From: Macrostomum hystrix
Taxonomy: Eukaryota; Animalia; Platyhelminthes
DNA length: 64,000 bases
Direction: 5' to 3'
Assembly (NCBI GenBank): GCA_950097015.1
Contig: CATNEN010000005.1
Coordinates: 3,472,001-3,536,000 of the forward strand
Part shown: one piece after another, positions 4,165-64,000 of the stretch
Layout: each line of letters starts with the position of its first letter
How positions within the stretch are numbered: the stretch's first letter is position 1
Position numbers and translations under genes: made by a program
Notes under the pieces: generated by a model
Databases searched by the model: none
Told to the model about the DNA's origin: nothing
What the model saw: the letters and a program-made list of their open reading frames with translations, nothing else

Positions 4165-7060
4165 TGCTTTTATTCACTGGCTATTGGGGTTGTTATTCAC
4201 TGGCTATTGGGGTTGTTATTCACTGGCTATTGGGGTTGTTATTCTCTGGCTATTGGGGTTGTTATTCTCTGGCTATTGGGGTTGTTATTCTCTGGCTATT
4301 AGGGTTGTTATTCTCTGGCTATTGGGGTTGTTATTCACTGGCTATTGAGGTTGTTATTCACTGGCTATTGGGGTTGTTATTCACTGGCTATTGGGGTTGT
4401 TATTCACTGGCTATTGGGGTTGTTATTCACTGGCTTTTGGGGTTGTTATTCACTGGCTATTGGGGTTGTTATTCACTGGCTATTGGGGTTGTTATTCACT
4501 GGCTATTGGGGTTGTTATTCACTGGCTATTGGGGTTGTTATTCACTGGCTATTGGGGTTGTTATTCACTGGCTATTGGGGTTGTTATTCACTGGCTTTTG
4601 GGGTTGTTATTCACTGGCTATTGGGGTTGTTATTCACTGGCTATTGGGGTTGTTATTCACTGGCTATTGGGGTTGTTATTCACTGGCTATTGGGGTTGCT
4701 ATTCACTGGATATTGGGGTTGTTATTCACTGGCTATTGAGGTTGTTATTCACTCGCTATTGGGGTTGTTATTCACTGGCTATTGGGGTTGTTATTCTCTG
4801 GCTATTGGGGTTGTTATTCACTGGCTATTGGGGTTGTTATTCTCTGGCTATTGGGGTTGTTATTCACTGGCTATTGGGGTTGTTATTCACTGGCTATTGA
4901 GGTTGTTATTCACTGGCTATTGGGGTTGTTATTCACTGGCTATTGGGGTTGTTATTCACTGGCTATTGGGGTTGCTATTCACTGGCTATTGGGGTTGTTA
5001 TTCACTGGCTTTTGGGGTTGTTATTCACTGGCTATTGGGGTTGTTATTCACTGGCTATTGGGGTTGTTATTCACTGGCTATTGGGGTTGTTATTCACTGG
5101 CTATTGGGGTTGTTATTCACTGGCTATTGGGGTTGTTATTCACTGGCTTTTGGGGTTGTTATTCACTGGCTATTGGGGTTGTTATTCACTGGCTATTGGG
5201 GTTGTTATTCACTGGCTATTGGGGTTGTTATTCACTGGCTATTGGGGTTGCTATTCACTGGATATTGGGGTTGTTATTCACTGGCTATTGAGGTTGTTAT
5301 TCACTCGCTATTGGGGTTGTTATTCACTGGCTATTGGGGTTGTTATTCTCTGGCTATTGGGGTTGTTATTCACTGGCTATTGGGGTTGTTATTCTCTGGC
5401 TATTAGGGTTGTTATTCTCTGGCTATTGGGGTTGTTATTCACTGGCTATTGGGGTTGTTATTCACTGGCTATTGGGGTTGTTATTCACTGGCTATTGAGG
5501 TTGTTATTCACTGGCTATTGGGGTTGTTATTCACTGGCTATTGGGGTTGTTATTCACTGGCTATTGGGGTTGTTATTCACTGGCTTTTGGGGTTGTTATT
5601 CACTGGCTATTGGGGTTGTTATTCACTGGCTATTGGGGTTGTTATTCACTGGCTATTGGGGTTGTTATTCACTGGCTATTGGGGTGGCTATTCACTGGAT
5701 ATTGGGGTTGTTATTCACTGGCTATTGAGGTTGTTATTCACTCGCTATTGGGGTTGTTATTCACTGGCTATTGGGGTTGTTATTCACTGGCTTTTGGGGT
5801 TGTTATTCACTGGCTATTGGGGTTGTTATTCACTGGCTATTGGGGTTGTTATTCACTGGCTATTGGGGTTGTTATTCACTGGCTATTGAGGTTGTTATTC
5901 ACTGGCTATTGGGGTTGTTATTCACTGGCTATTGGGGTTGTTATTCACTGGCTATTGGGGTTGTTATTCACTGGCTATTGGGGTTGTTATTCACTGGCTA
6001 TTGGGGTTGTTATTCACTGGCTATTGGGGTTGCTATTCACTGGCTATTGGGGTTGTTATTCACTGGCTATTGGGGTTGCTATTCACTGGCTATTGGGGTT
6101 GTTATTCACTGGCTATTGGGGTTGCTATTCACTGGCTATTGGGGTTGTTATTCACTGGCTATTGGGGTTGTTATTCACTGGCTATTGGGGTTGTTATTCA
6201 CTGGCTATTGGGGTTGTTATTCTCTGGCTATTGGGGTTGTTATTCACTGGCTATTGGGGTTGTTATTCACTGGCTATTGGGGTTGTTATTCACTGGCTAT
6301 TGGGGTTGTTATTCACTGGCTATTGGGGTTGTTATTCACTGGCTTTTGGGGTTGTTATTCACTGGCTATTGGGGTTGTTATTCACTGGCTATTGGGCTTG
6401 TTATTCACTGGCTATTGGTGTTGTTATTCAGTGGCTATTGGGGTTGTTATTTACTGGCTTTTGGGGTTGTTATTTACTGGCTATTGGGGTTGTTATTCAC
6501 TTGCTATTGGGGTTGTTATTCACTGGCTATTGGGGTTGTTATTCACTGGCTATTGGGGTTGCTATTCACTGGCTATTGGGGTTGTTATTCACTGGCTATT
6601 GGGGTTGCTATTCACTGGCTATTGGGGTTGTTATTCACTGGCTATTGGGGTTGCTATTCACTGGCTATTGGGGTTGTTATTCACTGGCTATTGGGGTTGT
6701 TATTCACTGGCTATTGGGGTTGTTATTCACTGGCTATTGGGGTTGTTATTCTCTGGCTATTGGGGTTGTTATTCACTGGCTATTGGGGTTGTTATTCACT
6801 GGCTATTGGGGTTGTTATTCACTGGCTATTGGGGTTGTTATTCACTGGCTATTGGGGTTGTTATTCACTGGCTTTTGGGGTTGTTATTCACTGGCTATTG
6901 GGGTTGTTATTCACTGGCTATTGGGCTTGTTATTCACTGGCTATTGGTGTTGTTATTCAGTGGCTATTGGGGTTGTTATTTACTGGCTTTTGGGGTTGTT
7001 ATTTACTGGCTATTGGGGTTGTTATTCACTTGCTATTGGTGTTGTTTTTCACTTGCTATT
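4165..7060. repeat. Large minisatellite array, 23-bp unit (ggctattggggttgttattcact), about 2.9 kb
   Basis: Direct periodicity. All the LLFTGYWGCYS ORFs are translation artefacts of this array. Confidence 0.98.
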
Positions 7061-11200: not shown

Positions 11201-12668
11201 ATGCCTATACTCACCTTTGCCTAGCTGCAGAGGTGGGAGCCAGTGTTTTAAAGAATCGCTGCACTCTAGCCGTTGACAGGTGAGACCGCTCCACCGCTCT
11301 TTCCTGGAATTCATTGTTTGAATTCATGTTGCAAAACAGTTACAATAACGAAAAAAAATCAAAATTAAGCGCTTCACCTGCAGAGCGGCTTGTCGTTGAT
11401 TATAGTTATCTTCCTGAAGGAACTGGCTCAGCTCGTCGTTGATGTTCACTCGGCCAAGCGAAGGATCTGCATCGCTGTGTCTGTTTGGAATTGAATTAAG
11501 AACTATATAAAGAAACTTTGCTTTAAAATAACTAGTTTATGTCTACTGCATTGTATTTTACATGTAGGGACAGTTCAGTTTCATTTTCAACTTCAGCTAA
11601 TTAATTTGTGTCTTTTGTTTAAACTTCTACACCTGAGCTTAGACGTCTGGGAGTTTTTAAGCTTGATCACCCCCGGTGGTTTGGAGTCAAAATAAAGTAG
11701 GGCTTTTTTAGCTTACAAACCCGAGCTACCAAGCTTAGATTCTTGAGGGCATTTCAAGTTGGAAGCCTTAGAATATTTTCCTTACCTGAGCGGTCCTTCC
11801 TTAGGTTTCCGATTGGGATTCGGCACCCAAACGTATTCCCTGCTGGCATTGTGAAGCCCGAAAAAATTTCGCGTCGCCTCTCCTTGTTGCTGCAGCTCCG
11901 ATATATCCTGCACGCGGAGAACCTGTTGCTTAGTAGCAGGACGACGACGACCACCATGTTGCCGCCTTCTACTAGAAAGCTTTTTCTTGTCTCCATCTTC
12001 CTCTTCTTCCTCATCTTCATCGAAATCGTTTTCTTCTCCATCATCTTGTTCCGGATCGTATCCTTCTTCACTGCTGCGAGTAACTCGCTTGTGCACCCCT
12101 TCCTGCTTCAAGTTCGGTTCCCTCTGGTGCCTGCTCAGACTGGACATTGGTGTCGGCATGTGTTTGATTGACAGCTGACCGGCCGAGATGCCCCGGCCTC
12201 CGCCCGTGGTGGATTGCCAGTCTTCGGCATCAAACGAGTGACCACCGACACTGTTGAACAATTCATTAACTAGGTTGTGCACCTTCTGAGTGGGGATCTC
12301 CGCAGCTGAAATTATTGTACGTAGCAGTGAAAGAAATAAAGTTGAAAAGGAAGAAAATGTTATTCCCTTCTCTAGAATTATTATTTTTAAATTATTCTTC
12401 AATTTATGCTAAGAAGGTACTCAATAATTAACTAAATTAAATCTACTGTATTGTTCTTACCTCTACGGGGCGCTGAATCTTGTTCAGATTTTTTATCTTT
12501 TTGATAGATTTCGCTTGGTGGTAGGCCTTTTAGCATAAGCAAATATGCATTTCTGCGGTACAGCTTTCTAGACGCCCAACATGATGGGTGGGAACAGCCA
12601 ACATCACTACAATGGTTTATCACCAAAGTAGGAGTCTCCATTCGCGCAATCGCTGCTAAAGCATCCAT
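8233..12668 (-). CDS. Uncharacterised protein of about 722 aa, possibly C9orf43/DUF4647-like
   Basis: Seven exons join in frame: 12668-12461, 12305-11786, 11480-11378, 11303-11215, 10580-10518, 9827-9254, 8844-8233. The motifs CSHPSCW, EYVWVP and LPSGLLSEVL recall CQHPQCW, VVLWIP and LPQDLLKELL of human C9orf43, in the same order (from memory). Confidence 0.7.
8860..9215. repeat. Intronic minisatellite, 23-bp unit (aatcggtggtgtttcaggactgg)
   Basis: Direct periodicity inside the intron at 9253-8845. Confidence 0.95.
9816..10110. repeat. 50-bp tandem repeat, about 6 copies, overlapping a splice acceptor
   Basis: Units start at 9816, 9866, 9916, 9966, 10016 and 10066. Confidence 0.95.
10941..11178 (+). 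mobile_element. tRNA-derived SINE copy with an inverted 5' part and an (att)n tail
   Basis: The 3' part matches the SINE tail at 34225-34305. Positions 10941-11035 are the reverse complement of the B-box and adjacent region of the same family. Confidence 0.65.
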
Positions 12669-24649: not shown

Positions 24650-25230
24650 ATCTGAGGATTTGGGATGTCGCTGCTTGATCTGAGGATTTGGGATGTCGCT
24701 GCTTGATCTGAGGATTTGGGATGGTTGCTGCTAGATCTGAGGATTTGGGATGGTCGCTGCTTGATCTGAGGATTTGGGATGGTTGCTGCTTGATCTGAGG
24801 ATTTGGGATGGTCGCAGCTTGATCTGAGGATTTGGGATGGTCGCTGCTTGCTCTGAGGATTTGGGATGGTTGCTACTTGAACTGAGGATTTGGGATGGTT
24901 GATGCTTGATCTGAGGATTTGGGATGGTTGCTACTTGATCTGAGGATTTGGGATGGTTGCTACTTGATCTGAGGATTTGGGATGGTCGCTGCTTGCTCTG
25001 AGGATTTGGGATGGTTGCTACTTGATCTGAGGATTTGGGATGGTTGCTACTTGATCTGAGGATTTGGGATGGTTGCTGCTTGATCTGAGGATTTAGGATG
25101 GTTGCTACTTGATCTGAGGATTTGGGATGGTCGCTGCTTGATCTGAGGATTTGGGATGGTTGCTGCTTGATCTGAGGATTTAGGATGGTTGCTACTTGAT
25201 CTGAGGATTTGGAAGGTGCCTTCTTAATCT
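24650..25230. repeat. Minisatellite, 29-bp unit (gatctgaggatttgggatggttgctgctt)
   Basis: gatctgagg occurs at 24792, 24821 and onward. Confidence 0.95.
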
Positions 25231-25929
25231 GAGAATTTTGAGGGTCTTAATTAGAACTCAGAATATCATTGATACTGAAGCAAGAAGCTTAGCGATTTAA
25301 TCGCTTGTTTAGAAAAAAATATTCCACAACAAAAAGAGCAGCTTCGAGAAACGCGAAAATCAAATTAACAGCAGCTGGCTTAAATCTCTATAGAGCACTG
25401 ATTTTAATTTACTCGTTGAAAATAAAGCCAATTATTACCACTTCGACTATAGCAGACAAATACTTGTAAATAGAGAAAGATTAACTCAATCATAGAAAGA
25501 AAAAGCAGATTTACAATGAAAGCTAGAAACTAAATCGGCGCACTGAGATCCTTGATTCATTTCTGCGACTACGTAAATTTATTTTAATACATATCAGTAG
25601 TAAGAAAAGTAAATAGCAGTCATAATAAAATACTTTGTTATATTGACGAGCGAATCATTTTAAGACAATCAATTTTAGTCTGACGGCAAGGAAAAACTTT
25701 TAATGTGCGTTTAAAATAATTTGAGATAATTGCTTAAATACAATTTATTTTTCCAGCTTTACGTATTTTTCTAATTGATTTAAACAAAAATTTATAATTT
25801 CCGTGCTCTTTCAGCTGAAAATTTTCCGTCACAGTTCTGCAGTGTTAAAAAATCAGCAAATCGTATTTTAGTGTTTCTTTAACTGAATTGCAAAGAAAAA
25901 ACTCGCTTTTAAAAAGACAAAACGTCAAC

Positions 25930-31944: not shown

Positions 31945-34815
31945 CCGATAACCTTGACGCGATAATAAAAACCTAAAAATCTTGAATTTGAGACTGATAA
32001 GTTGTAAAAAACCAATCATGTATACATATGCAGGACGCATTTTGATTCGCGTTGAGATACTTTTTAGCAGAATTTCAAGCACATCTGAACTATCAATTTT
32101 TTCAAAGCTGTAAATAAATATTGTTTGGATTTGTACTTTTTTTCCGGAAAATTTGACAGTTGATTTTGATTTTTGAACTACGTCATCTGAAACTAACGAT
32201 CAAGGGTATTTTTTGTTTGGGTAAATTAGGAATACTAGTTCTTAAGTTGCCCAAGTTGCTTATAAACTACCAAAGTTCAAAATAAAAAGGCTGGAGAAGG
32301 TTTTCATAATTTAAATTTTTGCATGAATTCTAAACAAGCAATCACTAAAAGTCATATCACTAAACAAAAAGTGACAGTATTAGTCGAAATCGGATTTGTA
32401 ACAAACTTTGAAAAATAATTAAAGGGTTTAGTGATCGAAAGGGTTTCGTTAGTTAGGTAACGAAAGTTAATAAATAATTAACTTTTGAGGAGTTGATCGT
32501 ATAAGAACTTATCGTTGAGTGTTGCGTTCTGGCATAATGATCGTCAGTTTTATGCACATGACTAAATTGCTCATCTAGTATTCTAGATGCTCGTGGACAT
32601 AAATATAGCTGATCGATACAGGCCGCGATCGATCGACGCGTTCGTCTCTTTTAGTATAGTGACTCATCTTAAGCCGATAATTCGAGATCGCAGCCAAAAT
32701 AAAAAAAAATAGTTTCGAATTGCTTCCATGCAGCAATGCAGTTGCGCGCACGAGTTAATTATTTCACGAGTCGATCATACTAATAAAATCATCAAAAATA
32801 CATATATGAAATGTCATGAAGACTCGATATACCAGTTCTCTATTTATTCATTGCGCATCATGATTCTACCGACGAATCAGATGTGTACATGCAAATATAC
32901 GAGTATATGATCGCTTGTCATATAGAGAAGTCTAGATTTTAGAAGACAGATCACAACAAGTGTAGGGATGCATAATGTACTACCACAAAATTCAACTAAA
33001 AGCATTCTGGAGTAGATGAATATTTTAGTGCAATCCGAATAAACAAAGGATCGCATCATGCTATCAGCCGCTTGATAAAAAAGCAATACTACAAAAACTT
33101 ACTAAACCTATAATGACAGATAAATTACTTGTGGATTGCAACAAAATGTGTTACAGTTGCCATCTAAAAGTCATTACATACGAGTGTTACTTGAATAATA
33201 ATGTAATTCTTGAAGAGCGTCTCGAATAAACAATATTTTATCATGGCTGTGAAAACTACATAATTACAGGTTCACATGCCGTACGCTGGCTATATGTAGT
33301 GAAATGTTAAATATTTTTTATTAGAAGAAAGCAATAAGCACACGATGTAGATAAAGAAAGTCCAACTATATAGAGCGAAGCTTTTAAGTTGAAATCGTCG
33401 ATTACTTTATCTGTCAGCCACAATTTCTGTGTATTCTGTAACGTCACTGACGGGTCGTGAGTTCGAGTCTCGGATTTCCGTGCTACCACAGTTTTGCTTC
33501 GGCATCATGGAGAAATAGATGCAGTTGTTGTCGTCCTAAATAGACAATTAAGTGGCAATTTTTAGCGACATAAGATAGATAGAAACTACACCGGTCGAGA
33601 TAGCTCTTCAGTAGAGTAATTTCTGCCACACCCACGTACACCAACTTTCTAGCCTAACTCATGCTGCAGTACCCATCACAATTTAAATGCATGAGATCAA
33701 GCTCGAGGGAATTAAATGTAGTCGGAAGTTCTCAATGACGCTCTAACAACAGGGCCACAAGCTCCCCTGTAGCGCACTGTACTAAATATAATCATGATAT
33801 GGTACAGATCTATAACAGCCTTACATCTGTATTGTTTAAACCTGGTGCATCCGTAGTTGAAAGCTGCTGCAATGGCACCGGCACCTCCTCGGACATCGCT
33901 GCTTTCAACACCTGTACGGGAGGCCCTTGTGTTAAGGTCATCTGCGGGGGTGCAGAGTGGCATTGAGTGAGTTAACGTGTTTGCCTCTCACACCAACTGA
34001 GGTCCCTGAGCTCGATTCCGCGGTGAGACCACATTCATTTAGGGCGCAGCCGCGCAAAGAAGGCTTTGAGGGCTTGTGGTGCAATTTACGCCCTTGAGGG
34101 CCAGCCTCCAAGGCAGAGTGAAAGTGTACACTGCCTGACGATGAGAAAGTCAGGGCAGATGTACACACTTGGTGAGTGTGTGCCTGCGTACAGTATCTGT
34201 GTGCCTGTTTGATCAGGAGTAAGCGGAATGGGCAGAATTGCCTTCTCGCTGGACGCCGGTCTAGTGACACCTAATGATGTGCCATTGCCCGCAGCCCTCC
34301 TGCAAATATTTTTATATTGTTATGAGGTCATCTGCAATCTATGTACCATGAGTAACGATCGAAACTTAAAATAATAAAACGCTTTGTTTCGCAAAGCAAG
34401 ACTTGCAAAAGTTACCTTTCTTCGGTAAATGAAAGTGACGGCTGATATGACAAAAACATTCGCAAACATTAGACCCACGGTCAAGAGGACGAACATCAGA
34501 AGATCTTGATTGCGGTCTATAAATAATCAGGTAATGTTATGAAGTTCAATTCAATAATAAGCTGGTCCTCGATCACTAAACGCATACTCACCGCAATCAG
34601 ATTTAATACTGGTGCAAAGGGTTTTCACAGTCACATTTGAGAGCCATGTAACATTCGCTTGAGCAGCAGTGCATTCTAACTTAAGTTGAGCTTCCTTGTT
34701 TCCACTGCAGCAGTTAAGGCACCTCCAATGTGATGTCAGGGACTCACTGAAACCACTGCTCAAGCTTTTATTCGCTGCATCACTGGATGACACATTTAAG
34801 TTGTTTCCCATGTTG
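31945..34815 (+). repeat. Segmental duplication, copy 1 (direct copy at 61129-64000)
   Basis: Near-identical by eye, with an offset of about 29,185 bp. It includes the 3' exons of receptor gene A and its SINE. Confidence 0.95.
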
Positions 34816-36650
34816 TCAAACGCTACGCACTGATGCTCTGATTTCGGATCTGAGGTGGATGACGTGAAGCTGAATGTCACGTGACCAAATGACTCGGCGC
34901 TGCAGCTTGACGGCTTGTCAACCGCGATTCTCAAATTTTTTGGCGGATCTGTTACGTAACGAACGCGATAAATGCGTTTTATGCAAAAATAAAATTAGGC
35001 ATAGTTGAACTAGCTATGGATAACTCACACAAAACCCGCAGTCTTCGAGTACTGGATGCTTCAAGACCAGTTCCACCTGAACTGCAGGTGTAGCTCCCCC
35101 CATGGTGCAACTCCAGCTGATGAATTGTGTAAGTTCGGTTTCCACTGTCCAACGTCACATTGAAAGTTGAATGGGTGAGTCTGATTGGCTCTGAGGAAAC
35201 AACTGGGCAGAGTACATCGCATTGCACGGTCACACTGGAGCCAAGCTCTGCTGCGTTGTTGAATGCGCTCGCTGGATGAAACACGGCTGCAATTTTGGGG
35301 ACGGCTTAGTAACGGATTTTCTATTTTTAGATATAGGTATGAAATTTTATTCGCTGTATTGTTGTACCTACTTTCCAAAGTAATACTCCGATTAATCCAC
35401 ATGTCGACAAAGCTCAGGCACTGGCGCACAAATTGAGTTTCGTTTGCAACATTTCTTCTTAAAATAATTATTCTCACCTATAAAATGTACATGAGTAGAA
35501 TTTTGTCTTGACAGGTCAAATGGCTGTTGACGAGCAGTCAATATAATTATTTTCTGGAAATTTTCGTTAGGCTGCAAAAAGATTCGTGATTAGACTGATC
35601 ACAAAAAACTTGCTCAACTTCATGTTTAAGCTTTTACCCACTAGTAGGGGACTATATTAATAGTCCAGACTTTTACGTAAAGGTTGACAGCTCGAATCTC
35701 GGTCCAGGGGAGGCAGTTAGACTTCTTGCTCAAGCAAGACACGAAATTCATTAGCCAGTTGTAAAACGGGTGCCAGATTCAGCTGGGGTAGAAACTGGGT
35801 GGGTTTGAAGGCTTCCACAGTCCACGGACTGAACGAATTAACTGTGGCTTTTCCACTGGCTGCATTATCCCCATCAGAATTATGAGTGTAAATACAAAAT
35901 ACTTAGTAATTTTTTAGAAAGAATAGTATTTTCGTTCTGTCAAACTTTTATGATTACCTTATGTCTAGCGCAGTTCACAGTCAAGATTTCCCCAGAAGAT
36001 ACGCTGGTTGGCGTCCTTCCGCACAGCCTCCAGGTTCCGTTTTCCGCCCCCTGAAAGACGGAGCTGATGTTTCTCGAGTCGCAGTGGTTCGAGCCGAAGT
36101 CCAGGTCTTCCGGCGATGTCCACACCTCAATGTCTGCTGCTCGAGCGGTCAAATTGTCTCCGTAGGTCGTAAGTTCACTTGGAGTCGATGCTTTTAAGTT
36201 AAGAAAAAATATCTGTATTAAAAAAGCAACTTGGGCGTTTTATATGGCAGGATAAAAATCACAGGAAGAGTAAGTGCTCACTTCTGACTCTGATGGACAC
36301 AGGGCTGATGCTCTCCTGCTGTCTCAGTTTTATCACAAACCAGTGGAATCCGGCATCAGCGCTTTGCAGACCTACCTTGGAGTGAAGAAATGGCCAGTTG
36401 CCAACTTCATCAGCTGAGCGACTCCAGAAGCAAGTGCTCGGTGGTTGATCGAAGCTGGATGACTGCCATGATGCTTCAATGGTGCTCTTTCTGATTGGAA
36501 GCATACCTGTTTGAAGCAATTGGGTTAACAAACAATGGAAAGCATTATAGATACATAAATCCAGTATTGGAAAACCTGACCGTCCCCTCGAATCAGAATG
36601 GCGAATCCAAGAAAAGCCAGGGTGACACGCAACACAGCCAGATGGTTCAT
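33407..36650 (-). CDS. Receptor gene A: SP + F-type-lectin/F5-8C-like + Ig + Ig-like + TM + tail with YFSM and ITSM-type TEYTEI, about 531 aa
   Basis: Exons 36650-36581, 36506-36282, 36190-35958, 35477-35372, 35286-35029, 34948-34592, 34516-34416 (TM), 33941-33825 and 33535-33407 join in frame. The Ig motif is HGGSYTC. Splicing into the tail exons depends on acceptor choice around a SINE (see findings). Confidence 0.75.
33946..34322 (+). mobile_element. Full-length tRNA-derived SINE with a target-site duplication, antisense in an intron of gene A
   Basis: It has an A-box-like agtggcattgagtg, a B-box-like ctgagctcgattcc, a 3' stem (complete as ggctgcggg/cccgcagcc in the 63-kb copy) and an AT-rich tail. 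It is flanked by aggtcatctgc at 33935-33945 and 34325-34335; the duplication is 13 bp in the 63-kb copy. Confidence 0.85.
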
Positions 36651-40187: not shown

Positions 40188-43038
40188 ATGGCTGCAGCCC
40201 AGGAATGCATTTTGCTGGCCCTCCTAGCTGGACTGTGTGCGGCTGACAGCAGTCAATGTGAGTTGCAGTCCATGGACATTCTTGTCCGATTGAGCACCAG
40301 TCCGTAGGTTGTCTCCCCTAACATGATTCTAAACTTATTTTCGTTTCAGGCACTCTCAACATCACCAAAGATTCCATCGCTGACTCGTGGCAGTCGTCCA
40401 GCTTTATTGATCACCATAAAGTTGCGCTGTGCTTTAAAAACCAGTCCACAGAGACACATTCCCAGCATTTCTACAGATTCTTCCACTCGAAAGTCAGTAA
40501 GAATGACTCAGATGCAGGCTATCACTGGTTTGTGATCAACCTGAAGAGGCCTGAGCTGATCAGCTCTGTGGGCATCAGTGCCAGAGCAGGTGAGCGATTC
40601 AGTTAATTTACAATCAAGAGCTACTGAATACCTGCTCCTAGCGACTCTCTTCAAGCTCTTGTTTGCAGCTCAAAAGTAGAAAATAATTGACATTGCAGAA
40701 GCAGATAAAGTTCCCATCGCTAAATTAAACCCCAGAGCAGCAGACATTGAGATCTGGACTTCTCAAACAGACGTGGATTTTGGACATGAGCACTGCGACT
40801 CAAAGAACATCAGCTCTACTTTCATTAGAGGAGAGAGCTCAGGTATCTGGAAGCTGTGCGGCAGGACGCCCTCAAATGTTTCTGCAGGACAAGAATTGAG
40901 CATTCCCTGCGTCAGGCAACAGGTGAGGCCATCAGGTGACTGATGGTTCATAATTCATGAGCAACCTTGCAGGTTTAATTAGGCGAGTATAATGCAAGCC
41001 AATATTCTGTATCAGCAATGCAGCTTAGGGTTTCTCTGGAGAAATATCCACATATATTTTATTTTAGTAGATTTGCAAACAAAATGACTAAAGATCGAGG
41101 CATAAACAGCAAGCAAAAACACAAATGTTGACTGTAATTTAGCATGGAGAATGTGGGTCACATGCTTTAGGGACAAATTTCTGAAACCACAAAAAGAGAC
41201 ACATTTTATTCCGCTTCTATTTCACCTAATTTAACAGTGCTGACATAACCAGAAACTGTATGCGGTTTTCAGGTCCAAATGATTCTGCTGAGAAAATACG
41301 TCGCAAACGTTGCTGATGCAGAAAACCAGTGCATGAACTTTATTGGTATGTGGATTCATAAATTTGAAATACAAGGTGAGTTTGCCGAACGGCTTTTGTT
41401 ACTACAACAGTACATCCACCGATACTATATCTCTTATCCACCTATATTAAATCCCTACGTATTCTAATGCTCGAAAATGAACATAATTGCTGCCAAGGCA
41501 GGATGCTTATAGAATAATCTTTTAAATAATTACTCCCCAAAAGCAACAGACCGATAATTTAAACTATTTCTTGTTCAATTCTGTCGAGCAAAGAAACTGT
41601 GCAAACTGATGTCATCGTCACGGTATGGAGAGAACGCCTTCTTCTTGTTGGATTTTCTGTTTTAAGTTACATTAGAAGTAGTAAGCTATAGTCTACCTCG
41701 CTAACCAAACCCCAGCTAGCACATAGGTAGCATTTTTGTGTTGAAATTGTGTTGAAATGTGTTGAAATTTGTGCTGAGAATTTTGTAAATCTTGGATAGC
41801 AGTTACTAAAAAAACTAAAAATAACAACAGCAAATCTATTTTGCGAATCTCTCCGGATAAAAATATAGAAAACATTGAGTCAATCGTTTCTTAAAACGTT
41901 TAGCTACAATTGAGCCATCCGATGAAGTTGTGAGAAACTCAAACGTCACAGTGAGCTGTCGGGTCCAGGTGTGCCACGAAGCACCTGTCGATCTGCCACC
42001 TGTTATTCTGACTCTCGCAAAGTCCAACGGAGATGAAAACACGATTAGCACCTTTCGCACTTCTGGCAACTCGAGTGCCAGCAGCGTGTCAGAATCCATT
42101 CAAAATGTGAACGAAAGTCACGCTGGCAACTACTCATGCAGAGTGGGTGACGAGGTCCTCAGCTCCCGACTGCTCAAAGTCTACTGTGAGTATACAAGAA
42201 GCCCGCAAAAGTGCCATTTCACAAGAGCACACAGCAATGTCTGCAGTCTCAAAAACTCAACAATCCCTGTTCTCAGATCCGCCAAGCAACCTGAGCATCT
42301 ACCGATCAAATGACACCTGTGCCACTGAGCCATCATATTGGAATTTCATCTTCGAGTCAACGCAGTCAGATCCACGTCCTCTGCACAAATGCTTTCTCAG
42401 AGACCACCAAGACAAAATAGCCACAGTAACAATGGCATTGAGTGTCACGGAATTGGATGGCAAATTCAGGTCGATTTGGAAATGCGAAAACTGTCTGACT
42501 GTGAATGTGACATGCACAGCACATTGGAATGATGATAAACTCTCATGGAGCGTCAGCACCACAGCGAGTCATTCTTGTCCTTTGACAACGGACTCTACCA
42601 TTCGGACTGAGGCACCTCATGTTGGCTCCAAGAGCACGGAGAAATATTCTCATGCTGAAACCATTACAATGGCAGACAGGCAGTCAAGCACTTCCCCAGC
42701 TACACCAGTTACCGCAGAACCAGCTGTTAAGAGCTCTTTTAAACCGGTGCTGTTGGCGATCGCAGTTGGACTCGTTGTTATCGGTACTTGGCTCGCAGTC
42801 ATACTCAGCAAGGTAAATATAATGTTGAGGAATTGAAATATCAAAAGTGAAACAATCCGTCATTGCTCCAACTGTCTGTTCTATGCAGCGATTCGCCTCG
42901 AGATCTCGCGACAGGTCACAGGAGGCAGGGATGGCTTCGCCACTGGAACGGCTCAGAGAGACGACAATCAATTGGAGTAAATTTCGTGTAGCAAATTGGA
43001 ATAAAAACAGGGATAATGTGGAACTCTTGATTGAGTAG
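40188..43038 (+). CDS. Receptor gene B: SP + lectin-like + Ig + Ig-like + Ser/Thr stalk + TM + Tyr-free tail, about 534 aa
   Basis: Exons 40188-40257, 40350-40589, 40699-40922, 41273-41375, 41904-42185, 42277-42812 and 42889-43038 join in frame with canonical sites. The Ig motif is HAGNYSC and the TM is VLLAIAVGLVVIGTWLAVIL. Confidence 0.85.
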
Positions 43039-43745: not shown

Positions 43746-43784
43746 GCAGTGGTCCTAGCTGAAGACCCAGTCAGCCTGTGATTT

Positions 43785-44134
43785 TCACACCTCAATGTCG
43801 GCTGCTCGAGCGGCCAAATCGTCTCGGAATTTTCTGCTGTCATCTGTACAAAAGGCTTTCACAATTTTCAAAATATTCACAATTAAGGCAGAATAAGTGC
43901 TCACTTCTCGCCGTGATGGACACTGAGCTGATGCTCTCCTGCTGTCTCAGTTTGATCACAAGCCAGTGGAATCCGGCATCAGCGCTTTGGGTGCCTTGAA
44001 TTAGTGAAGAAATTTCGAGGTGCCAACATGATTAGCTGAGCCACTCTAGAGGCAAGCACGATACGTTGAATGATACATATAGCTGGACGACTGCCACGAT
44101 GCTTCGATGTTGCTCTTGCGTATGAAAATATTAC
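43785..44134 (-). pseudogene. Receptor family pseudogene F (lectin exon 2 and the start of exon 3 only)
   Basis: It translates as IEASWQSSSY...AC L* ... FLH*, with in-frame stops and a frameshift. Exon 3 breaks off after AARAADIEV. Confidence 0.85.
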
Positions 44135-44284
44135 CTGCTACAAAAAATTTGCTCTAAAGAGTATCGATGGAATTTTGAAACAAGTGCTTGCAGAAGCTAG
44201 CAGAAGATGCCCGCTTTTAAGAAATGTGAACATTTCGTAAACACAAATCGTTCTTTCAGACCGATGTCCATAAACTTCCTCCTA

Positions 44285-44995
44285 AGGAGGGAGAGTGCCA
44301 GAGCGGTCTAACCACGTTTGCCTCTCGCAACAAGGTCCCTGAGTTCGATTCCACTGAGGACGCAGCCTCAGGCGGAGTGTACAGTGCCTGATGATGAGAA
44401 AGTCAGATCAGATGTGAGTGTGTGCTCAGGAGTGTGTACTCAGGAGTGTGTGCTCAGGAGTGTGTGCTCAGGAGTGTGTGCTTAGGAGAGTGTGCTCAGG
44501 AGTGTGTGCTCAGGAGAGTGTGCTCAGGAGTGTGTGCTCAGGAGTGTGTGCTCAGGAGTGTGTGCTCAGGAGAGTGTGCTCAGGATTGTGTGCTCAGGAG
44601 TGTGTGCTCAGGAGTGTGTGCTCAGGAGAGTGTGCTCAGGAGTGTGTGCTCAGGAGTGTGTGCTCAGGAGAGTGTGCTCAGGAGTGTGTGCTCAGGAGTG
44701 TGTGCTCAGGAGTGTGTGCTCAGGAGTGTGTGCTCAGGAGTGTGTGCTCAGGAGTGTGTGCTCAGGAGTGTGTGCTCAGGAGTGTGTGCTCAGGAGTGTG
44801 TGCTCAGGAGTGTGTGCTCAGGATTGTGTGCTTAGGAGTGTGTGCTCAGGAGTGTGTGCTCAGGAGTGTGTGCTCAGGAGTGTGTGCTCAGGAGTGTGTG
44901 CTCAGGAGTTAGCGGAATGGTAGAACTGCCTCCTCAATGGCTGCGGGTCTACTGTCACCAATAATGGATGTGCCAGTGCCCTCCAAAAATATTTA
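44285..44995 (+). mobile_element. tRNA-derived SINE copy containing an expanded 14-bp minisatellite (ctcaggagtgtgtg)n at about 44420-44910
   Basis: The head (gtgccagagcggtctaa...gagttcgattcc) lies before the array and the tail (gcggaatggtagaactgcctcctc) lies after it. Confidence 0.85.
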
Positions 44996-45364: not shown

Positions 45365-46455
45365 ATTGTTTAGTCGAGTGTGCCTTACGGGCTTTAAACA
45401 CTCAGACTTCACATTCAAATATAAACGATAAAAATATTCTGCAGGTTTATTCGAACTGAATCAGCTGCATGCGTGGAAGCATTTTTATCTTGTCGGACAA
45501 TATTTTGGATCACGTTAAAACAGCCACAGGTCTTTACTTTCTGAGTCTGAAATCGTTAGTCAGAGTGGGTGACACTGTGAGAGAGTGGTGGAGAGTGTGC
45601 GAGGATGGAAGAGAGTTGCTGAGAGCGAGGTAGAGTGGGAAGGATTCGTGGCTGACAGACTCAGTTGGCATAGTGAAAAGCAAATATAGTACTACATGTG
45701 CAACATGCTTATCAACATGTTTATGCTTATTAGAAATATCGAGACTTTGCCAGTTTCTCTGTCCATTGCCTCTCAGCTCAGGTCACTCGGTAACGTAAAC
45801 ACTGCGTTGCCATCGCGGACGCTCGGGCCTCGTTCGATTTTGTCGACTTTCGTGACTCCTCAGCCGACTCTGGAATTTTCGGCGAATTATCAGGTCGCAA
45901 CAATGAGTCCTGCAAGATGAATGCAGCATGTCGCAGCACAAACATGGACTTTAAAATCGGCTTGCAACTACATTTTAACTACCTTTCACAATTTGATGGT
46001 CGTGGGTCATTCTGATTTTGTAGTCCCTCATGGCGGCATCAATGAGGCATCTTTGATTGGATTACCTGGCTCTAACTAGCAGGATGCTGCCGACAATGAG
46101 AAATAGTATCAGAACAGAAACAAACCCAAGTAGAATCCCAATGGCCGGTTGCAGCTGAACAACACATTCTGTAACACTATGTCTAGCAACAGAAATCATA
46201 TGTTAAATCAAGATACAGCTTTGCTGGTTCAAAAATTTGTCTTTGCCTGTCTTCCGCTTTGAATTCAGATCAGGCGAACTAAATATTTGAAGGTATAAAT
46301 CTTGTCAATTAGATTTCTTTGGCATTGTGCCTCGATTAAGGGCGGATGATACACGAAGGTTTTGCGGACATTTTGCTGAATTGCCTCGTTGGCTGCGGGC
46401 AAATTGGCTAACCAAACAACATGCCCACTGCCCTCCTGCAAATATTAATGTCTTG
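45365..46455. repeat. Dispersed repeat block, present rearranged at about 58690-60010 and partly at about 52620-52760
   Basis: 45715-46290 is inverted at about 58815-59400. 45365-45535 and 46318-46455 are direct at 59715-60010. Confidence 0.8.
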
Positions 46456-47190
46456 TGTCTCATCTATTCCGTGTCTCCTTTTTCCCTTGTCTCATCTCTC
46501 CGTGTCTTATCTATTCCGTGTCTCTTTTTTCCCTTGTCTCATTACTCCGTGTCTCATCTCTTCGTGTCTCATCTATTCCGTGTCTCATCTCTTCGTGTCT
46601 CATGTATTCCGTGTCTCTTTTTTCCCTTGTCTCATTACTCCGTGTCTCATCTATTCCGTGTCTCTTTTTTCACTTGTCTCATTACTCCGTGTCTCATCTC
46701 TTCGTATCTCATGTATTCCGTGTCTCATCTCTTCGTGTCTCATCTCTTCGTGTCTCATGTATTCCGTGTCTCATCTCTTCGTGTCTCATGTATTCCGTGT
46801 CTCATCTCTCTGTGTCTCATCTCTTCGTGTCTCATGTATTCCGTGTCTCATCTCTTCGTGTCTCATCTCTCCGTGTCTCATCTATTCCGTGTCTCATCTC
46901 TCCGTGTCTCATCTCTCCGTGTCTCATCTATTCCGTGTCTCAGTTATTCCGTGTCTCATCTCTCCGTGTCTTATCTATTCCGTGTCTCATCTCTCCGTGT
47001 CTCATCTATTCCGTGTCTCAGTTATTCCGTGTCTCATCTCTCCGTGTCTTATCTATTCCGTGTCTCATCTCTCCGTGTCTCATCTATTCCGTGTCTCAGT
47101 TATTCCGTGTCTCATCTCTCCGTGTCTTATCTATTCCGTGTCTCATCTCTCCGTGTCTCATCTATTCCGTGTCTCAGTTATTCCGTGTCT
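46455..47190. repeat. Minisatellite, about 16-bp unit (tgtctcatctattccg / tgtctcatctcttcg) following a SINE tail
   Basis: Direct periodicity starting immediately after ccctcctgcaaatattaatgtc. Confidence 0.95.
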
Positions 47191-47551
47191 CTTCTTAGCG
47201 ATAACATCTGGGCTGGTAACCCTCATGCCTTATAGAGCTGACTACCAGTGGAGGTCATGGTTGAACTAACAGCTGTAATTTACTCAATTCATGTGAGCGA
47301 AGAAATTACAACACATGGAATAGCTGCATGTGAGAATGTAAAAATTTATTTCACTTAGTAGACAACAAAGCTTTAGATTGACTTCCAAGTTGTGATTCGA
47401 AAATTTGAGATTGAAAATCGAGTAACAGCCAGGCAAACATGACGTCCTTATTTAAAGGACCCGCTGATATTAGCTTGAACATAATATCTACTAGCCATGC
47501 TTATTACTTGAAGTTAGCGCGAGTAAGATGTGGCTAATAAAACTATTATTG

Positions 47552-48319: not shown

Positions 48320-51026
48320 CTAAGCTTCGATGTAGATGCTTGCTCGAGATGGTCGAGCTGCCGACATCTTGATGGCTTGCTGGCGCTCAACAATGGCCAG
48401 CTGCCTCTGAAACAGTTGAGCACTGATTTATCAAAGCCAGATTTCATAAAAAGTTTGTCAGGTAAAGCTGCTACCTTTGTTTTCACCAGATAACCGCAAA
48501 CGCTCAAGAGTGCCGCGGTGAGAACAGCAATGAGCAACCAAGGAAGCCAGATCACTGAGCACACTTGCTTTGGCTGCATGTCGGATTTCGTTGCAGCTGA
48601 AATCACAGAGCAGCGAGCATCAAATTTCATTGCGACTGATTTTCTACAAAAGCTTAAACTCTTCTTACACTTCTGTTTCCAGTCGATGCTTGCGTGAGTT
48701 GAGAACAGCAGTCGAGACTGGCTCACTTCATCAAACTGATGAGCTGAGCAGTTTGCAGTCAGCCTGTCAACATAGGAGCACTTCTCACAGACCCACACAG
48801 AGGTCAGTGACTGTGAGCTGGTCATACTCGAGTTTCCAAGTCTTCGCAGAGTGAGCAGTCTGAGACTCGAGTCGGTAGCAATGCACTCATGCTCAGGAGT
48901 AGGCTCTGACACTGACGACTCAAAAGTTATTGCGAATCGAGCTCGAGACCCCACACTGAGACTGTGCTCATCAACGGAGATCGACAGATGTCTCGGAGGA
49001 TCTGCAATGTGCACTTTTATGAGTGAGTGTTGGATAGTTTGATGGGCTCATTGGTAACGAGCCACTCACGGAGTACTCGCAGGGTCTGGCTGCTGAGCAC
49101 CTCATCGCCTAGGCTGCAGATGTAGTTGCCTGCATCAGACAGCTGCACCTGCTCAATCAGGTGAGCTTGCAATCCGGTGGAGAGTGTCAGAGGGGAGTTT
49201 TCACGAGTCAGTCTGACCATTTTGATCGTCTCATTGTTCTGTATGCAATCGACATGGCATCTGACGGTGACTTGTGAGTTTTGAATCGCCGAATTCTTTG
49301 ATATATTCGCTATTGATGAAATTCGGAATTAGGTATGAAAAACATTGTAAACGGTAAGAAGGTCACATGGAGTATTTCAAACTCCAACATTTTGTCTGTA
49401 TCTCCTAAATTATTCAACCATTCGCCATGAAAGTCCTTAACCCGGGCTAAAACTTTTAGCTCTATCCGATTAAACAACTTCCAGAATCACAAAACGTCAG
49501 CATCGTCGAGATATTTAAGAATTCTCGTCGGGGTGTCTACTATTGTGAGGCTACTATTGTGAGGCTACTATTGTGAGGCTACTATTGTGAGGCTACTATT
49601 GTGAGGCTACTATTGTGAGGCTACTATCGTTAGTCTATTATTGTGAGGCTACTATTGTGAGGCTACTATTGTGAGGCTACTATTGTGAGGCTACTATTGT
49701 GAGGCTACTATTGTGAGGCTACTATTGTGAGGCTACTATTGTGAGGCTACTATTGTGAGGCTACTATTGTGAGGCTACTATTGTGAGGCTACTATTGTGA
49801 GGCTACTATTGTGAGGCTACTATTGTGAGGCTACTATTGTGAGGCTACTATTGTGAGGCTACTATTGTGAGGCTACTATTGTGAGGCTACTATTGTGAGG
49901 CTACTATTGTGAGGCTACTGTTGTTGACTATTTTGCATTGATTGATATTGTTATTTTTTTACTTTTGAACCGCTAGAGTTCGCCAAGAGGTTTATACAGA
50001 ACAATGTCACTAGTCCATGTCACCTAGGACTTCGACATGCATCGCTGAATATCTCGACTATGCTAGCTCAGACGGCTCTAAAAGCTAGTTCATCGTAAAA
50101 GATGGAAAACTTCATTCATACGTGATATCTTACTGAATGCAGCAAATCTTCTGAGCCACATGTCGACGAAAGCCATCGCTCGTCTAATGGGCTTTGTTTC
50201 TGTCGCGACAAATCTCCTTAATAAAACAATGCGGACCTGAAAAGGGTCTCACATTCCGTACTGATGTGGAACGGACACGAATTTTTACCTTAATTTTTGC
50301 GTCTGCAATTACCTTATGTGTAGTGCAGTTTACAGTCAAAGTTTGTCCGTATGAAACTTTGTTTGGCGTCCTTCCGCACAGCCTCCAGGTTCCGCTTTTC
50401 GCCCCCTGAAAGACGGAGCTGATGTTTCTCAAGTCGCAGTGGTTCGAGCCGAAGTCCAGGTCTTCCGGCGATGTCCACACCTCAATGTCTGCTGCTTGAG
50501 CGGTCAAATTGTCTCCGTAGGTCGTAAGTTCATATTGACTCAAAGCTTTTAAGTTGAGAAAAAATATCTGTATTAAATAAGCAACTTGGGCGTTTTATAT
50601 GGCAGGATAAAATCACAGGAAGAGTAAGTGCTCACTTCTGACTCTGATGGACACAGAGCTGATGCTCTCCTGCTGTCTCAGTTTTATCACAAACCAGTGG
50701 AATCCGGCAACAGCGCTCTTGGTGCCCTCCTTGGAGTGAGCAAATCGCCAGGAGCCAACTTCATCAGCTAAGCGACTCCAGAAGCAAGTGCTCGGTGGTG
50801 GATCGAAGCTGGATGACTGCCATGATGCTTCAATGGTGCTCTTTCTGATTGGAAGCATACCTGTTTGAAGCAATTGGGTTAACAAACAATGGAAAGCATT
50901 ATAGATACATAAATCCAGTATTGGGAAACCTGACCGTGCCAGCTCACATCTGTCTGAGTCCCCTCGACTCAGAATGGCGAATCCAAGAAAAGCCAGGGTG
51001 ACACGCAACGCAGCCAGATGGTTCAT
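48320..51026 (-). CDS. Receptor gene C: SP + lectin-like + Ig + Ig-like + TM + short tail ending SIYIEA, about 497 aa
   Basis: Exons 51026-50948, 50860-50636, 50545-50313, 50236-50134, 49309-49070, 49001-48475 and 48406-48320 join in frame. The Ig motif is DAGNYIC. If the last intron is retained, the ORF reads to 48304 with a Tyr-free tail. Confidence 0.8.
49545..49920. repeat. Intronic minisatellite, 14-bp unit (ctactattgtgagg)
   Basis: Near-perfect periodicity in intron 4 of gene C. Confidence 0.97.
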
Positions 51027-54214: not shown

Positions 54215-57200
54215 ATGGCTGCAGCACAGGAATGCATTTTGCTGGCAGCGGCCCTTCTAGCTGGACTGTGTGCGGCTGACAGCAGTCAATGTGAGTTGCA
54301 GTCCATGGACAATCTTGACCGATTAAGAATCAGTCAGTAGTGCGTCCACTTCAATTGATTCTAAACTTATTTTTGTTTCAGGCACTCTCAACATCACCAA
54401 AGATTCCATCGCTGAATCGTGGCAGTCGTCCAGCTTTCTAGATAACAATCAGGCAACACTGTGCTTTAAAAACCAGTCAACTGAGAATGATTCCCAGCAT
54501 TTCTACAGATTCTTCCACTCCAAAGCCAGTAAGAATGACGCTGATGCAGGCTATCACTGGTTTGTGATCAAACTGAAGAGGCCTGAGCTGATCAGCTCTG
54601 TGGGCATCAGGGCCAGGTCAGGTGAGCGATTCAGTTAATTTACAATCAAGAGCTACTGAATACCTGCTCCTAACGATTCCCTTCAAGCTCTTGTTTGCAG
54701 CTCAAAATAAATAACTAACTGACATTGTAGAATGGATGGGAGTTTCCATCGATTATTTAAACCCCAGAGCAGCAGACATTGAGATCTGGACTTCTCAAAC
54801 AGACGTCGATTTTGGACATGAGCACTGCGACTCAAAGAACATCAGCTCTACTTTCATTAGAGGAGAGAGCTCAGGTATCTGGAAGCAGTGTGGCAGGACG
54901 CCCTCAAATGTTTCTGCAGGACAAGGCTTGAGCGTGCCCTGCGTCAGGCGACAGGTGAGGCGATCAGGTGACTGCTGGTTCATAATTTATGAGCAATATA
55001 AAATTTTGGGTTGAAGCTTAGTCGTTAAAGCGTCAAACCCACACCTTGAAGCGAGTTTCTGGGTGTTCTATTCCTGACTTCATTGGAACAATTTGAGTTG
55101 TTTAGCAAGACACTTACCTCTGCATTGCTTCAGTTCATCCAGCTGTTAAATGTGTACCAGAATCAGCTGGGGTAATTGAAGGTGGGTGTGGCGTCCCCCC
55201 AGTCCATGGACTGAACAGCCAAACGCAGCCTTCAGATGCTCCCCCAATAGCTGCCGCTGTGCTGTCGGCTGCACATCTGACCCAATGGGGCAGGTGTAAT
55301 CAGCCAACTGTTACTCAAGAGCAAACGGTTGACAGCTCAGTGAATCGAACTCAGTTTACTCAGTGAAGTAAACAAAAATTTGCTAGGAAAAGGAATACCT
55401 TAGGATTGTTTTCCCGAGAAATGATCTACATTAGCACAGTATCTATTTTGTGGCACACATCGACTAAAGTTTGAGGCAAATAGAAGCTATAGGAAGGCAT
55501 CAAGGTCGATTTTACTTGAGCCGAGAATGTGAGTCACAGACTTTAGGGACAAGATTCTTTTGCATCTGTTGAAATTTCTCTAAAATTAATAACTATATTA
55601 TTTCTCTAAATCCAAACATAACGAGAAACTATACGCGGCTTTCAGGTCCGAATGATTCTGTTGAGAAAATACGTCGCAAACGTTTCTGATTCACAAAACC
55701 AGTGCATGAGCTTCATTAGCATGTGGATTCGAAAAAGTGTATTAGAAGGTGAGTTTGTCCAACGATTTGTCATTAAAATTATTCCTAATAAAAAAGCAAG
55801 CATGTGATGAGGCCTATAGAGTCAAATCATTCAATAAATGTTGGTCGCGGTATTGAGAACGCTTGAAATTAGACTAACAGTTCTACTTTGCTAACTCTCG
55901 CTATGGTGGGTGACATGCTTGTGCTGAAGGAGAGCAGACTAGGAGAGCACATACTGAAATAAAGGAGCAAAAGCACATACTCAAAGAAAATGAAAAGCAC
56001 ACTTAACTATCTCGAAAATCACGTATGCTTAGAAAATCTGATATGCTTAGAAAATCTGATATGCTTAGAAAATCTGATATGTTTAGAAAAAAACATAGAC
56101 TCACTCTTTTCTTTTGGCGTCTAGCTACAATTGAGCCATCTAATGAAGTTGTGAGAAACTCAAAAGTCACAGTGAGCTGTTGGGCCGCGGTGTGCCATGA
56201 AGACAGTTTTATTCTGACTCTCGCAAAGCCCAACGGAAACAAGAACGCAAGCACCATTCGCACTTATGGCATCTGGAGTGCAAGCAGCGTGTCAGAATCC
56301 ATTCAAAATGTGAACGAAAGTCACGCTGGTAACTACTTATGCAGAGTGGGTGACGAGGTCCTCAGCTCCCGACTGCTCAAAGTCTACTGTGAGTATACAA
56401 TGAAGCCCACATAAGTGCCATTTCACAAGAGCACACAGCAATGTCTGCAGTCTCACAAACTCAACAATCCCCGATCTCAGATCCGCCAAGCAACCTGAGC
56501 ATCTACTCAAATGACAACTGCGCCACTAAGCCGTCGGAACGGAATTTCACCTTCGAGTCAACGCAGTCAGATCCACATCCTCTGCATAAATGCTTTCTGA
56601 GAGACCACCGAGACGAAAATGCCACAGTAACAATGGCATCGAGTGTCACAGAATTGGACAGCAAATTCAGGTCGATTTGGAAATGCGAAAACTGTCTGAC
56701 TGTGAATGTGATATGCACAGCACATTGGAATGATGATAAACTGTCATGGAGCTACAGCACCACAGAAAGTCTGTCTTGCCCTATGAACTCAGTCTCATTC
56801 AGTGAGTTGGAGATTATGTCTGCAGTACTTGTCACAGTTTCTATAGTACATAATGATCTAGGCGGACTCTGAACTTTGAAATGTTACTGATTCACTTTGT
56901 CCCCTCCCAGTTGGGCTTGACTGGAGTCTTGACTTCACATAAAACATGATTTCAGGTGCCCTTCGATGTGCTTATCAGATGCAAGCCTCCATTTGGATTC
57001 TGTTGGCAGTCATTTCGGTCCTGACATTGCTCCTGATTGTAGTCAGCATCTGTCTGTGGAGAACTCGGGTAATGCACTCCAGGATGCTAGCTGTGCTCAC
57101 AATTCATGCTCCATTCAGTCTGACAGCAACTGGTTCGTGTAAATAAAAAACATTCACATTTCAGAGCCGAATAAAAGTGTTGCTCGAAGATCAACAAAAT

Positions 57201-62592: not shown

Positions 62593-64000
62593 TTATCTGT
62601 CAGCCACAATTTCTGTGTATACTGTAACGTCACTGACGGGTCGTGAGTTCGAGTCTCGGATTTCCGTGCTACCACAGTTTTGCTTCGGCATCATGGAGAA
62701 ATAGATGCAGTTGTTGTCGTCCTAAATAGACAATTAAGTGGCAATTTTTAGCGACATAAGATAGATAGAAACTACACCGGTCGAGATAGCTCTTCAGTAG
62801 AGTAATTTCTGCCACACCCACGTACACCAACTTTCTAGCCTAACTCATGCTGCAGTACCCATCACAATTTAAATGCATGAGATCAAGCTCGAGGGAATTA
62901 AATGTAGTCGGAAGTTCTCAATGACGCTCTAACAACAGGGCCACAAGCTCCCCTGTAGCGCACTGTACTAAATATAAACATGATATGGTACAGATCTATA
63001 ACAGCCTTACATCTGTATTGTTTAAACCTGGTGCATCCGTAGTTGAAAGCTGCTGCAATGGCACCGGCACCTCCTCGGACATCGCTGCTTTCAACACCTG
63101 TACGGGAGGCCCTTGTGTTGAGGTCATCTGCGGGGGTGCAGAGTGGCATTGAGTGAGTTAACGTGTTTGCCTCTCACACCAACTGAGGTCCCTGAGCTCG
63201 ATTCCGCGGTGAGACCACATTCATTTAGGGCGCAGCCGCGCAAAGAAGGCTTTGAGGGCTTGTGGTGCAATTTACGCCCTTGAGGGCCAGCCTCCAAGGC
63301 ACAGTGAAAGTGTACACTGCCTGACGATGAGAAAGTCAGGGCAGATGTACACACTTGGTGAGTGTGTGCCTGCGTACAGTATCTGTGTGCCTGTTTGATC
63401 AGGAGTAAGCGGAATGGGCAAAATTGCCTTCTCGCTGGCTGCGGGTCTAGTGACACCAAATGATGTGCCATTGCCCGCAGCCCTCCTGCAAATATTTTTA
63501 TATTGTTATGAGGTCATCTGCAGTCTATGTACCATGAGTAACGATCGAAACTTAAAATAATAAAACGCTTTGTTTGCAAAGCAAGACTTGCAAAAGTTAC
63601 CTTTCTTCGGTAAATGAAAGTGACGGCTGATATGACAAAAACATTCGCAAACATTAGACCCACGGCCAAGAGGACGAACATCAGAAGATCTTGATTGCGG
63701 TCTATAAATAATCAGGTAATGTTATGAAGTTCAATTCAATAATAAGCTGGTCCTCGATCACTAAACGCATACTCACCGCAATCAGATTTAATACTTGTGC
63801 AAAGGGTTTTCACAGTCACATTTGAGAGCCATGTAACATTCGCTTGAGCAGCAGTGCATTCTAACTTAAGTTGAGCTTCCTTGTTTCCACTGCAGCAGTT
63901 AAGGCACCTCCAATGTGATGTCAGGGACTCACTGAAATCACTGCTCAAGCTTTTATTCGCTGCATCACTGGATGACACATTTAAGTTGTTTCCCATGTTG
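62593..64000 (-). CDS. Receptor gene A' (3' exons of a near-identical copy of gene A; 5' part outside the window)
   Basis: Exons >64000-63777, 63701-63601 (TM), 63127-63011 and 62721-62593. The tail ends VTVYTEIVADR. Confidence 0.75.
63132..63508 (+). mobile_element. tRNA-derived SINE with a 13-bp TSD (tgaggtcatctgc), duplicate of 33946-34322
   Basis: The TSD lies at 63119-63131 and 63509-63521. Confidence 0.88.

Follow-up and report, generated by a model that had tools for sequence, protein, structure and literature searches.

An ITSM-type tyrosine motif in the last exon of a Macrostomum receptor gene: expression, conservation and possible roles

Introduction

Motifs of the immunoreceptor tyrosine-based inhibitory (ITIM) and switch (ITSM) classes are the main off-switch route of vertebrate immune receptors, and their evolutionary depth is debated. 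The ITSM follows the consensus TxYxxV/I and the ITIM the consensus (S/I/V/L)xYxx(I/V/L) (PMC8631942). CD33-related Siglecs such as Siglec-5 carry the distal motif TEYSEI (PMC2722167), and in PD-1 the ITIM is at Y223 and the ITSM at Y248 (PMC7078208). Here we describe the last exon of gene A, a predicted receptor gene of the flatworm Macrostomum hystrix, which encodes the related hexamer TEYTEI. The gene lies on the minus strand of a stretch of 64,000 nucleotides, called the window (assembly GCA_950097015.1, contig CATNEN010000005.1, positions 3,472,001 to 3,536,000). Unless another locus is named, coordinates are positions in this window.

Neither ITIM/ITSM receptors of flatworms nor the receptor family described here, with its jelly-roll head and immunoglobulin (Ig) domains, came up in a search of the literature. 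Taken alone, gene A would only add to the invertebrate receptors whose tails carry a motif of this kind. In an undescribed family of predicted flatworm surface receptors, however, this hexamer class is both expressed and kept at the end of the tail. Since Macrostomum lignano is a laboratory model with RNA interference and transgenesis, the family offers a testable handle.

Expression and structure of the last exon

Contigs of three runs from one study (X2, X3 and X4) match gene A with seven skipped stretches, each bounded by GT..AG on the minus strand. The runs are RNA-derived and not genomic, since the exons are covered and most introns and flanks are at zero depth. X2 record 8 and X4 record 15 align to copy A with zero mismatches and contain the joints 34416 to 33941 and 33825 to 33535. 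The exon chain in the contigs is 36622-36282, 36190-35958, 35477-35372, 35286-35029, 34948-34592, 34516-34416, 33941-33825 and 33535 to at least 33341. When the spliced exons were translated, a single open frame was obtained from the head of gene A through to the stop. The parts of the gene are as follows.

36581..36650, minus strand: signal-peptide exon, ATG at 36650 (contigs; comparison with genes B and C, two further family copies)
35372..36506, minus strand: predicted head domain in three exons, 36506-36282, 36190-35958 and 35477-35372 (contigs, translation; head fold of the M. lignano relative P0007)
35029..35286, minus strand: Ig-like domain exon (contigs; Pfam Ig_2 and Ig_3 at E about 7e-4, below the curated cut-offs)
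34592..34948, minus strand: membrane-proximal domain exon (contigs; the P0007 counterpart folds as an Ig constant-type sandwich)
34416..34516, minus strand: transmembrane exon of 101 nt, last residues ...IYRRK, phase 0 at a codon boundary (contigs, translation)
33825..33941, minus strand: penultimate exon, 117 nt, 39 codons, phase 0 to 0, in the middle of the cytoplasmic tail (contig joints 33941 to 34416 and 33534/5 to 33824/5, CT..AC on the plus strand; translation)
33407..33535, minus strand: coding part of the last exon, 42 codons and the TAA stop (translation; splicing in X2 record 8 and X4 record 15)
33300..33406, minus strand: 3' untranslated region (sequence; X4 record 15 reaches 33341, X3 record 9 covers 33300-33465)

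The last exon follows a tttag acceptor (33536-33537) and its 42-residue translation reads DDNNCIYFSMMPKQNCGSTEIRDSNSRPVSDVTEYTEIVADR. It starts with DDNNCIYFSM and ends with SDVTEYTEIVADR and the stop at 33407-33409; an AATAAA lies about 85 nt past the stop on the minus strand, at about 33317-33322. The codons for YFSM are found at 33506-33517 and those for TEYTEI at 33422-33439, so that the four residues VADR stand between the motif isoleucine and the stop. The cytoplasmic tail of gene A has 84 residues and receives both of its tyrosines from this exon. Both TEYTEI and the TVYTEI of a partial duplicate, A2, match the ITSM pattern TxYxx(V/I). The ITIM pattern is not matched, as the distal motif has a threonine at −2.

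The translation thus agrees exactly with a preliminary description of this DNA, in which exon 33407-33535 encoded TEYTEI four residues before the C-terminus. Its assignment of the hexamer to the ITSM consensus, with a likeness to the TEYSEI of Siglecs, likewise fits the published motifs (PMC8631942, PMC2722167). The tail model of that description had the last exon and its frame right and lacked the 39-codon exon at 33825-33941, which lies between the last exon and the transmembrane exon. As this exon consists of 39 whole codons, the reading frame of the last exon is preserved, and the spliced contigs join it to the transmembrane exon in the frame first read. The ITSM-type motif accordingly lies in the cytoplasmic tail, spliced in frame downstream of the membrane span.

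Bases specific for copy A were found in the contigs at 33435, 33934 and 34481, and copy A itself is therefore transcribed. The RNA depth of the last exon is similar to that of the other gene A exons.

A tRNA-derived short interspersed element (SINE) on the plus strand, at about 33944-34310 with the head GGGGTGCAGAGTGGC, abuts the acceptor AG (33942-33943) of the 117-nt exon. Its word depth in the RNA contigs is in the thousands, and it is therefore carried by very many transcripts. An origin of the last exon itself from a repeat or a tRNA was considered because of the T-arm-like TTCGAGTCTCGG on its plus strand and was rejected. ARAGORN made no call, low-stringency blastn of the window returned the A2 copy alone, and the RNA depth was exon-like, not SINE-like.

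Conservation of the motif at the tail end

A hexamer by itself is weak evidence. One alternative is that TEYTEI arose by chance in a fast-evolving tail: when the 84-residue tail was shuffled, TxYxx[IV] appeared in 2.2% of the trials, and a six-frame translation of the window contains 39 such hexamers. Within six residues of the end, the pattern was found in only 0.2% of the shuffled tails. A chance origin also has to contend with an exon that is expressed and in frame and with the recurrence of the same block where the tails of two distant relatives end.

These relatives were reached by an exhaustive HMMER profile search of 1.8 billion representatives with the membrane-proximal exon of genes A to D, which gave three weak but true relatives, all from M. 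lignano. A word search with the membrane-proximal exon had no match. Word search from the three relatives led to the fuller proteins P0007 (A0A1I8J1S8, 446 aa) and P0008 (BOX15_Mlig021334g1). The tail of P0007 ends with SRVNSDATEYLEIISD and six further residues and contains TEYLEI. Of the 16 positions of its block, 12 are identical to those of the gene A sequence SRPVSDVTEYTEIVAD, and the rest of the tail is barely alignable. The local score between the two tails is 59, which was reached in 2 of 5000 shuffles. A word search with the P0007 tail returned only P0007 itself.

In the public model of P0008 the motif is missing. At its locus (L001, M. lignano NIVC01003065.1), an exon ending in KLFR is followed by a GTGAGT donor, a short intron, a cag acceptor and an unannotated last exon. 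This exon reads SRRLNGDVTEYLDIVSIGVVRQPK and a stop, which gives the tail end SRRLNGDVTEYLDIVS with TEYLDI. Two acceptors lie 5 nt apart within 12051-12131 of this locus: the upstream one leads to ...GDVTEYLDIV..., and the downstream one, used in the public model, to KA and a stop. The model misses the motif because its acceptor AG sits 5 nt further on. An annotation error is one possible cause; the other is that the gene truly alternates between a tail-less form and one with the motif. The nearness of the two acceptors suggests that a choice between them could yield both kinds of receptor.

Five residues, R, D, T, Y and I, do not vary in the four-way alignment of the tails. The family block at the tail end is S-R-x3-[SG]-D-[VA]-T-E-Y-x-[ED]-I-[VI], and the remainder of the tail diverges. 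The tails of A, P0007 and P0008 have exactly two tyrosines each, spaced by 28, 25 and 18 residues. The comparison among relatives that the preliminary description had suggested as a check thus shows the TEY block kept in two distant M. lignano relatives. Its reading of the YxxM as an SH2 consensus of PI3K p85 gained no support from them: YFSM is present in both the A and A2 tails and does not recur in the relatives, where the aligned tyrosines stand in YDTV and YINS.

On the aligned sequences, the recurrence in relatives raises the hexamer above chance, and we consider it very probable that TEYTEI is a real, conserved and functional tyrosine motif. A chance hexamer is hardly credible.

Architecture of the receptor and its family

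Exon 33407-33535 closes the coding part of a putative type I membrane receptor gene, whose family is so far known from Macrostomum flatworms only. A signal peptide is followed by a galactose-binding-type jelly-roll head, Ig-like domains, a single membrane span and the 84-residue tail. Pfam searches with every gene A exon and with the M. lignano proteins gave nothing above threshold, with weak Ig matches alone, and a sequence search of the PDB gave nothing above threshold either. Gene A and P0007 share 40% identity over the head and 24% from the membrane-proximal domain via the membrane span to the tail end. No nucleotide similarity was found between the window and the P0008 locus.

The AlphaFold model of P0007 has a transmembrane helix at 312-340. 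Its tail at 342-446 has a pLDDT below 50 and is predicted to be disordered, as expected for a linear motif; by analogy, the tail of gene A is taken to be disordered as well. Foldseek with the whole model returned only generic two-sandwich matches with an rmsd above 12 Å, and the fold searches were made domain by domain. Residues 209-307 match Ig constant-type domains with Z 10-11 and an rmsd of 2.2-2.8 Å over about 90 residues. Judged by this model, the receptor belongs to the immunoglobulin superfamily, with at least one predicted Ig-fold ectodomain.

The P0007 head, folded alone with a pLDDT of 67.8 and a pTM of 0.72, is modelled as a jelly roll of the galactose-binding-domain type. It matches CBM32 modules with Z 9.9-10.0 and the F-type lectins 1K12 and 3CQO with Z 9.4-9.5; the latter have 16-18% identity to the head model, the highest in the match list. 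F-type lectins have the fucose motif HX24RXDX4(R/K) (PMC5712786). A regular-expression search for the strict motif did not find it in the heads of A, P0007 and P0008, and the head is therefore called lectin-like and not an F-type lectin.

The window contains further copies of the family, among them three genes.

40337-42836, plus strand: gene B
51039-48667, minus strand: gene C
54369-57143, plus strand: gene D

Proposed role of the motif

When the receptor is engaged, a Src-type kinase would phosphorylate the distal tyrosine, and the phosphorylated motif would then dock a protein with an SH2 domain. A phosphotyrosine docking site for SH2 domains is probably what the motif provides. The best-fitting partner would be the tandem SH2 domains of a phosphatase of the SHP-2/Corkscrew type, in the manner of the ITIM/ITSM pairs found in PD-1, PECAM-1 and CD33-type Siglecs. 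We infer this partner because of the threonine at −2, the isoleucine at +3 and the second tyrosine 18-28 residues upstream. A PTPN11 homologue is included in a transcript list of M. lignano (PMC5946080), which is weak evidence. An SHP-type phosphatase with a dampening effect is a tentative assignment, possible rather than likely. The explanation as a whole, with the motif as a docking site of the ITIM/ITSM class in a receptor tail, stands at about an even chance.

Several points weigh against it. The flanks of the proximal tyrosine differ between the tails (NCIYFSM, ECCYDTV and DEFYINS), and none of the three has an ITIM, with C or E at −2 and M, V or S at +3. Closer relatives than the M. lignano set were not found in the protein libraries, so that the comparison covers three independent tails, below the level of orthologues. 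In the window, tblastn and regular-expression searches found no tail exon near genes B, C and D. To our knowledge SAP and EAT-2, from which the 'switch' meaning of the ITSM derives, are vertebrate proteins, and the name 'switch motif' is therefore only a formal one here. The optimum of Src-family SH2 domains is pYEEI, to which pY-x-[ED]-I is close, and YxxI also fits the YxxPhi sorting pattern. Finally, the copy A contigs X2 record 8, X3 record 13 and X4 record 17, from three runs, are unspliced across 36507-36580.

With its closeness to pYEEI, the motif might dock another SH2 protein, such as a Src-family kinase, a Syk/Shark-type kinase in a hemITAM-like manner or an adaptor, and the receptor would then be activating. 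No canonical ITIM stands alongside, and the acidic residues at −4 and −1 recall the flanks of a hemITAM. However, the spacing of 18-28 residues between the tyrosines is too long for an ITAM (the activation counterpart of the ITIM) and near that of ITIM-ITSM pairs, and the transmembrane segment of gene A has no charged residue for pairing with an adaptor. The invariant threonine at −2 marks the ITSM class, which in vertebrates binds SHP-2 and SHP-1 (PMC8631942). We regard an activating receptor as rather unlikely.

The conserved YxxI could also be read unphosphorylated by clathrin adaptors, as a YxxPhi sorting signal that serves endocytosis or lysosomal delivery and not signalling. YTEI, YLEI, YLDI and the proximal YFSM all fit Y-x-x-bulky hydrophobic, and the motif is near the C-terminus of a short tail that is predicted to be disordered. 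Some lysosomal membrane proteins carry such a motif near the C-terminus. The conservation, however, goes well past the tyrosine and +3: position −4 is Asp, −2 Thr and −1 Glu, +2 is acidic, and +4 is Ile or Val. Adaptors do not need these residues, and SHP-type SH2 ligands typically keep the one at −2. A sorting signal in place of a signalling motif is an improbable reading, and sorting and docking are not mutually exclusive.

Loss of the intron 1 donor in copy A

Copy A itself may make no membrane receptor. Compared with gene C, gene A lacks 22 nt, among them four codons and the intron 1 donor GTGAGC (36507-36650 of A against 50862-51026 of C). Intron 1 is real: in genes C and B it splits a cysteine codon after the first base (phase 1), and its splicing is seen in an X1 contig of a C-like transcript. 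In all the A contigs listed, intron 1 is retained. The frame from the ATG at 36650 then runs into a stop at 36527, after 41 codons, and the long frame from the head to the stop has no in-frame ATG or signal peptide upstream.

We put just under an even chance on the motif being without function in copy A, with gene A a young, still transcribed pseudogene whose intact tail reflects how recent the damage is. The loss of the donor, the retained intron in contigs of three runs, the frame closed after 41 codons and the missing start of the long frame all argue for this. Other observations speak against it. Splicing from a cryptic donor, G|GTCAGG at 36581/36580, would bring the frame back (...ILIRGD-G-MLPIRK), with a glycine in place of the conserved cysteine. 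This joint is absent among the contig joints listed, which are part of the total, with 17 further joints beyond them. X3 record 12 has its first base precisely at 36506, a hint of branching at the acceptor, and the remaining 546 codons are open. Because the gene has lost its intron 1 donor, the motif is perhaps idle in copy A.

The duplicate A2

Gene A lies partly within a duplication, 31945-34815 against 61129-64000, which is 98.4% identical. The window contains only the 3' part of A2, and its head lies outside.

62593..62721, minus strand: A2 copy of the last exon, reading TVYTEI (translation, alignment; within the duplication)

The two last exons are one base apart (T at 33435, A at 62621 on the plus strand), which turns TEY into TVY. 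The preliminary description had placed this change at a free position of the motif. The TVYTEI reading was confirmed; the position is free in the vertebrate consensus only, and Glu stands there, at −1 to the tyrosine, in three of the four family sequences compared, from which the TVY of A2 departs. As a test of constraint, the pair of A and A2 is uninformative because it differs too little: 571 coding nt contain 5 differences, and 2193 non-coding nt contain about 30 events.

The longest spliced contig, X2 record 8, ends at 33436, one base short of the sole exon difference between A and A2 at 33435. Such an end is what an assembly bubble would give if the TEY and TVY copies were both transcribed.

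Surroundings of the receptor genes

Two incomplete pieces of the family accompany the genes.

44174-43746, minus strand: head-domain fragment with lectin-like exons 44-81% identical to gene A and no recognisable rest of a gene
52250-51427, minus strand: inverted partial copy of the Ig, stalk and transmembrane exons of B/D, 88-96% identical, between C and D, with a frame break in the stalk exon

A tandem array with a 14-nt unit (44416-44909) adjoins the head fragment at 43746-44174. Long tandem satellite arrays flank the receptor cluster at 1-540, 2081-2829, 4170-7060, 24650-25238 and 46448-47195. The array at 4170-7060 has a 23-nt unit over 2.9 kb.

Comparison with known systems

P0007 and P0008 of M. 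lignano are true homologues of gene A, which share the head, the membrane-proximal Ig-like domain, the membrane span and the TEY-x-[ED]-I end. In contrast to gene A, they are without the extra Ig exon, and their automatic names are uninformative. The eel agglutinin (1K12) and the striped bass FBP32 (3CQO) resemble the head in fold; unlike them, the heads have no Pfam match and no fucose motif, and CBM32 modules score equally well.

PD-1 and PECAM-1 have in common with gene A the distal TxYxx[IV] and a second tyrosine about 25 residues upstream. PECAM-1 has the motif TVYSEV, which the TVYTEI of A2 resembles. The receptor differs from both in that it has no canonical ITIM partner and belongs to a flatworm, an animal not known to have SAP-type adaptors.

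The CD33-related Siglecs resemble gene A in the whole plan of a type I protein: a head of the glycan-binding type, Ig domains, a single membrane span, a two-tyrosine tail and a distal T-E-Y-x-E-I near the C-terminus. Here the head is a jelly roll and not a V-set Ig domain with the sialic-acid arginine, the proximal motif is no ITIM, and no sequence homology to these Siglecs was found. The resemblance would be convergent and would stand for a Siglec-like working at most, not for membership. In its fullest form, the proposal is that Macrostomum has a lineage-specific, fast-duplicating set of jelly-roll-headed Ig receptors whose C-terminal TEY-x-[ED]-I recruits a Corkscrew/SHP-2-type phosphatase. 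Such a convergent, Siglec-like inhibitory system in Platyhelminthes is an unlikely outcome.

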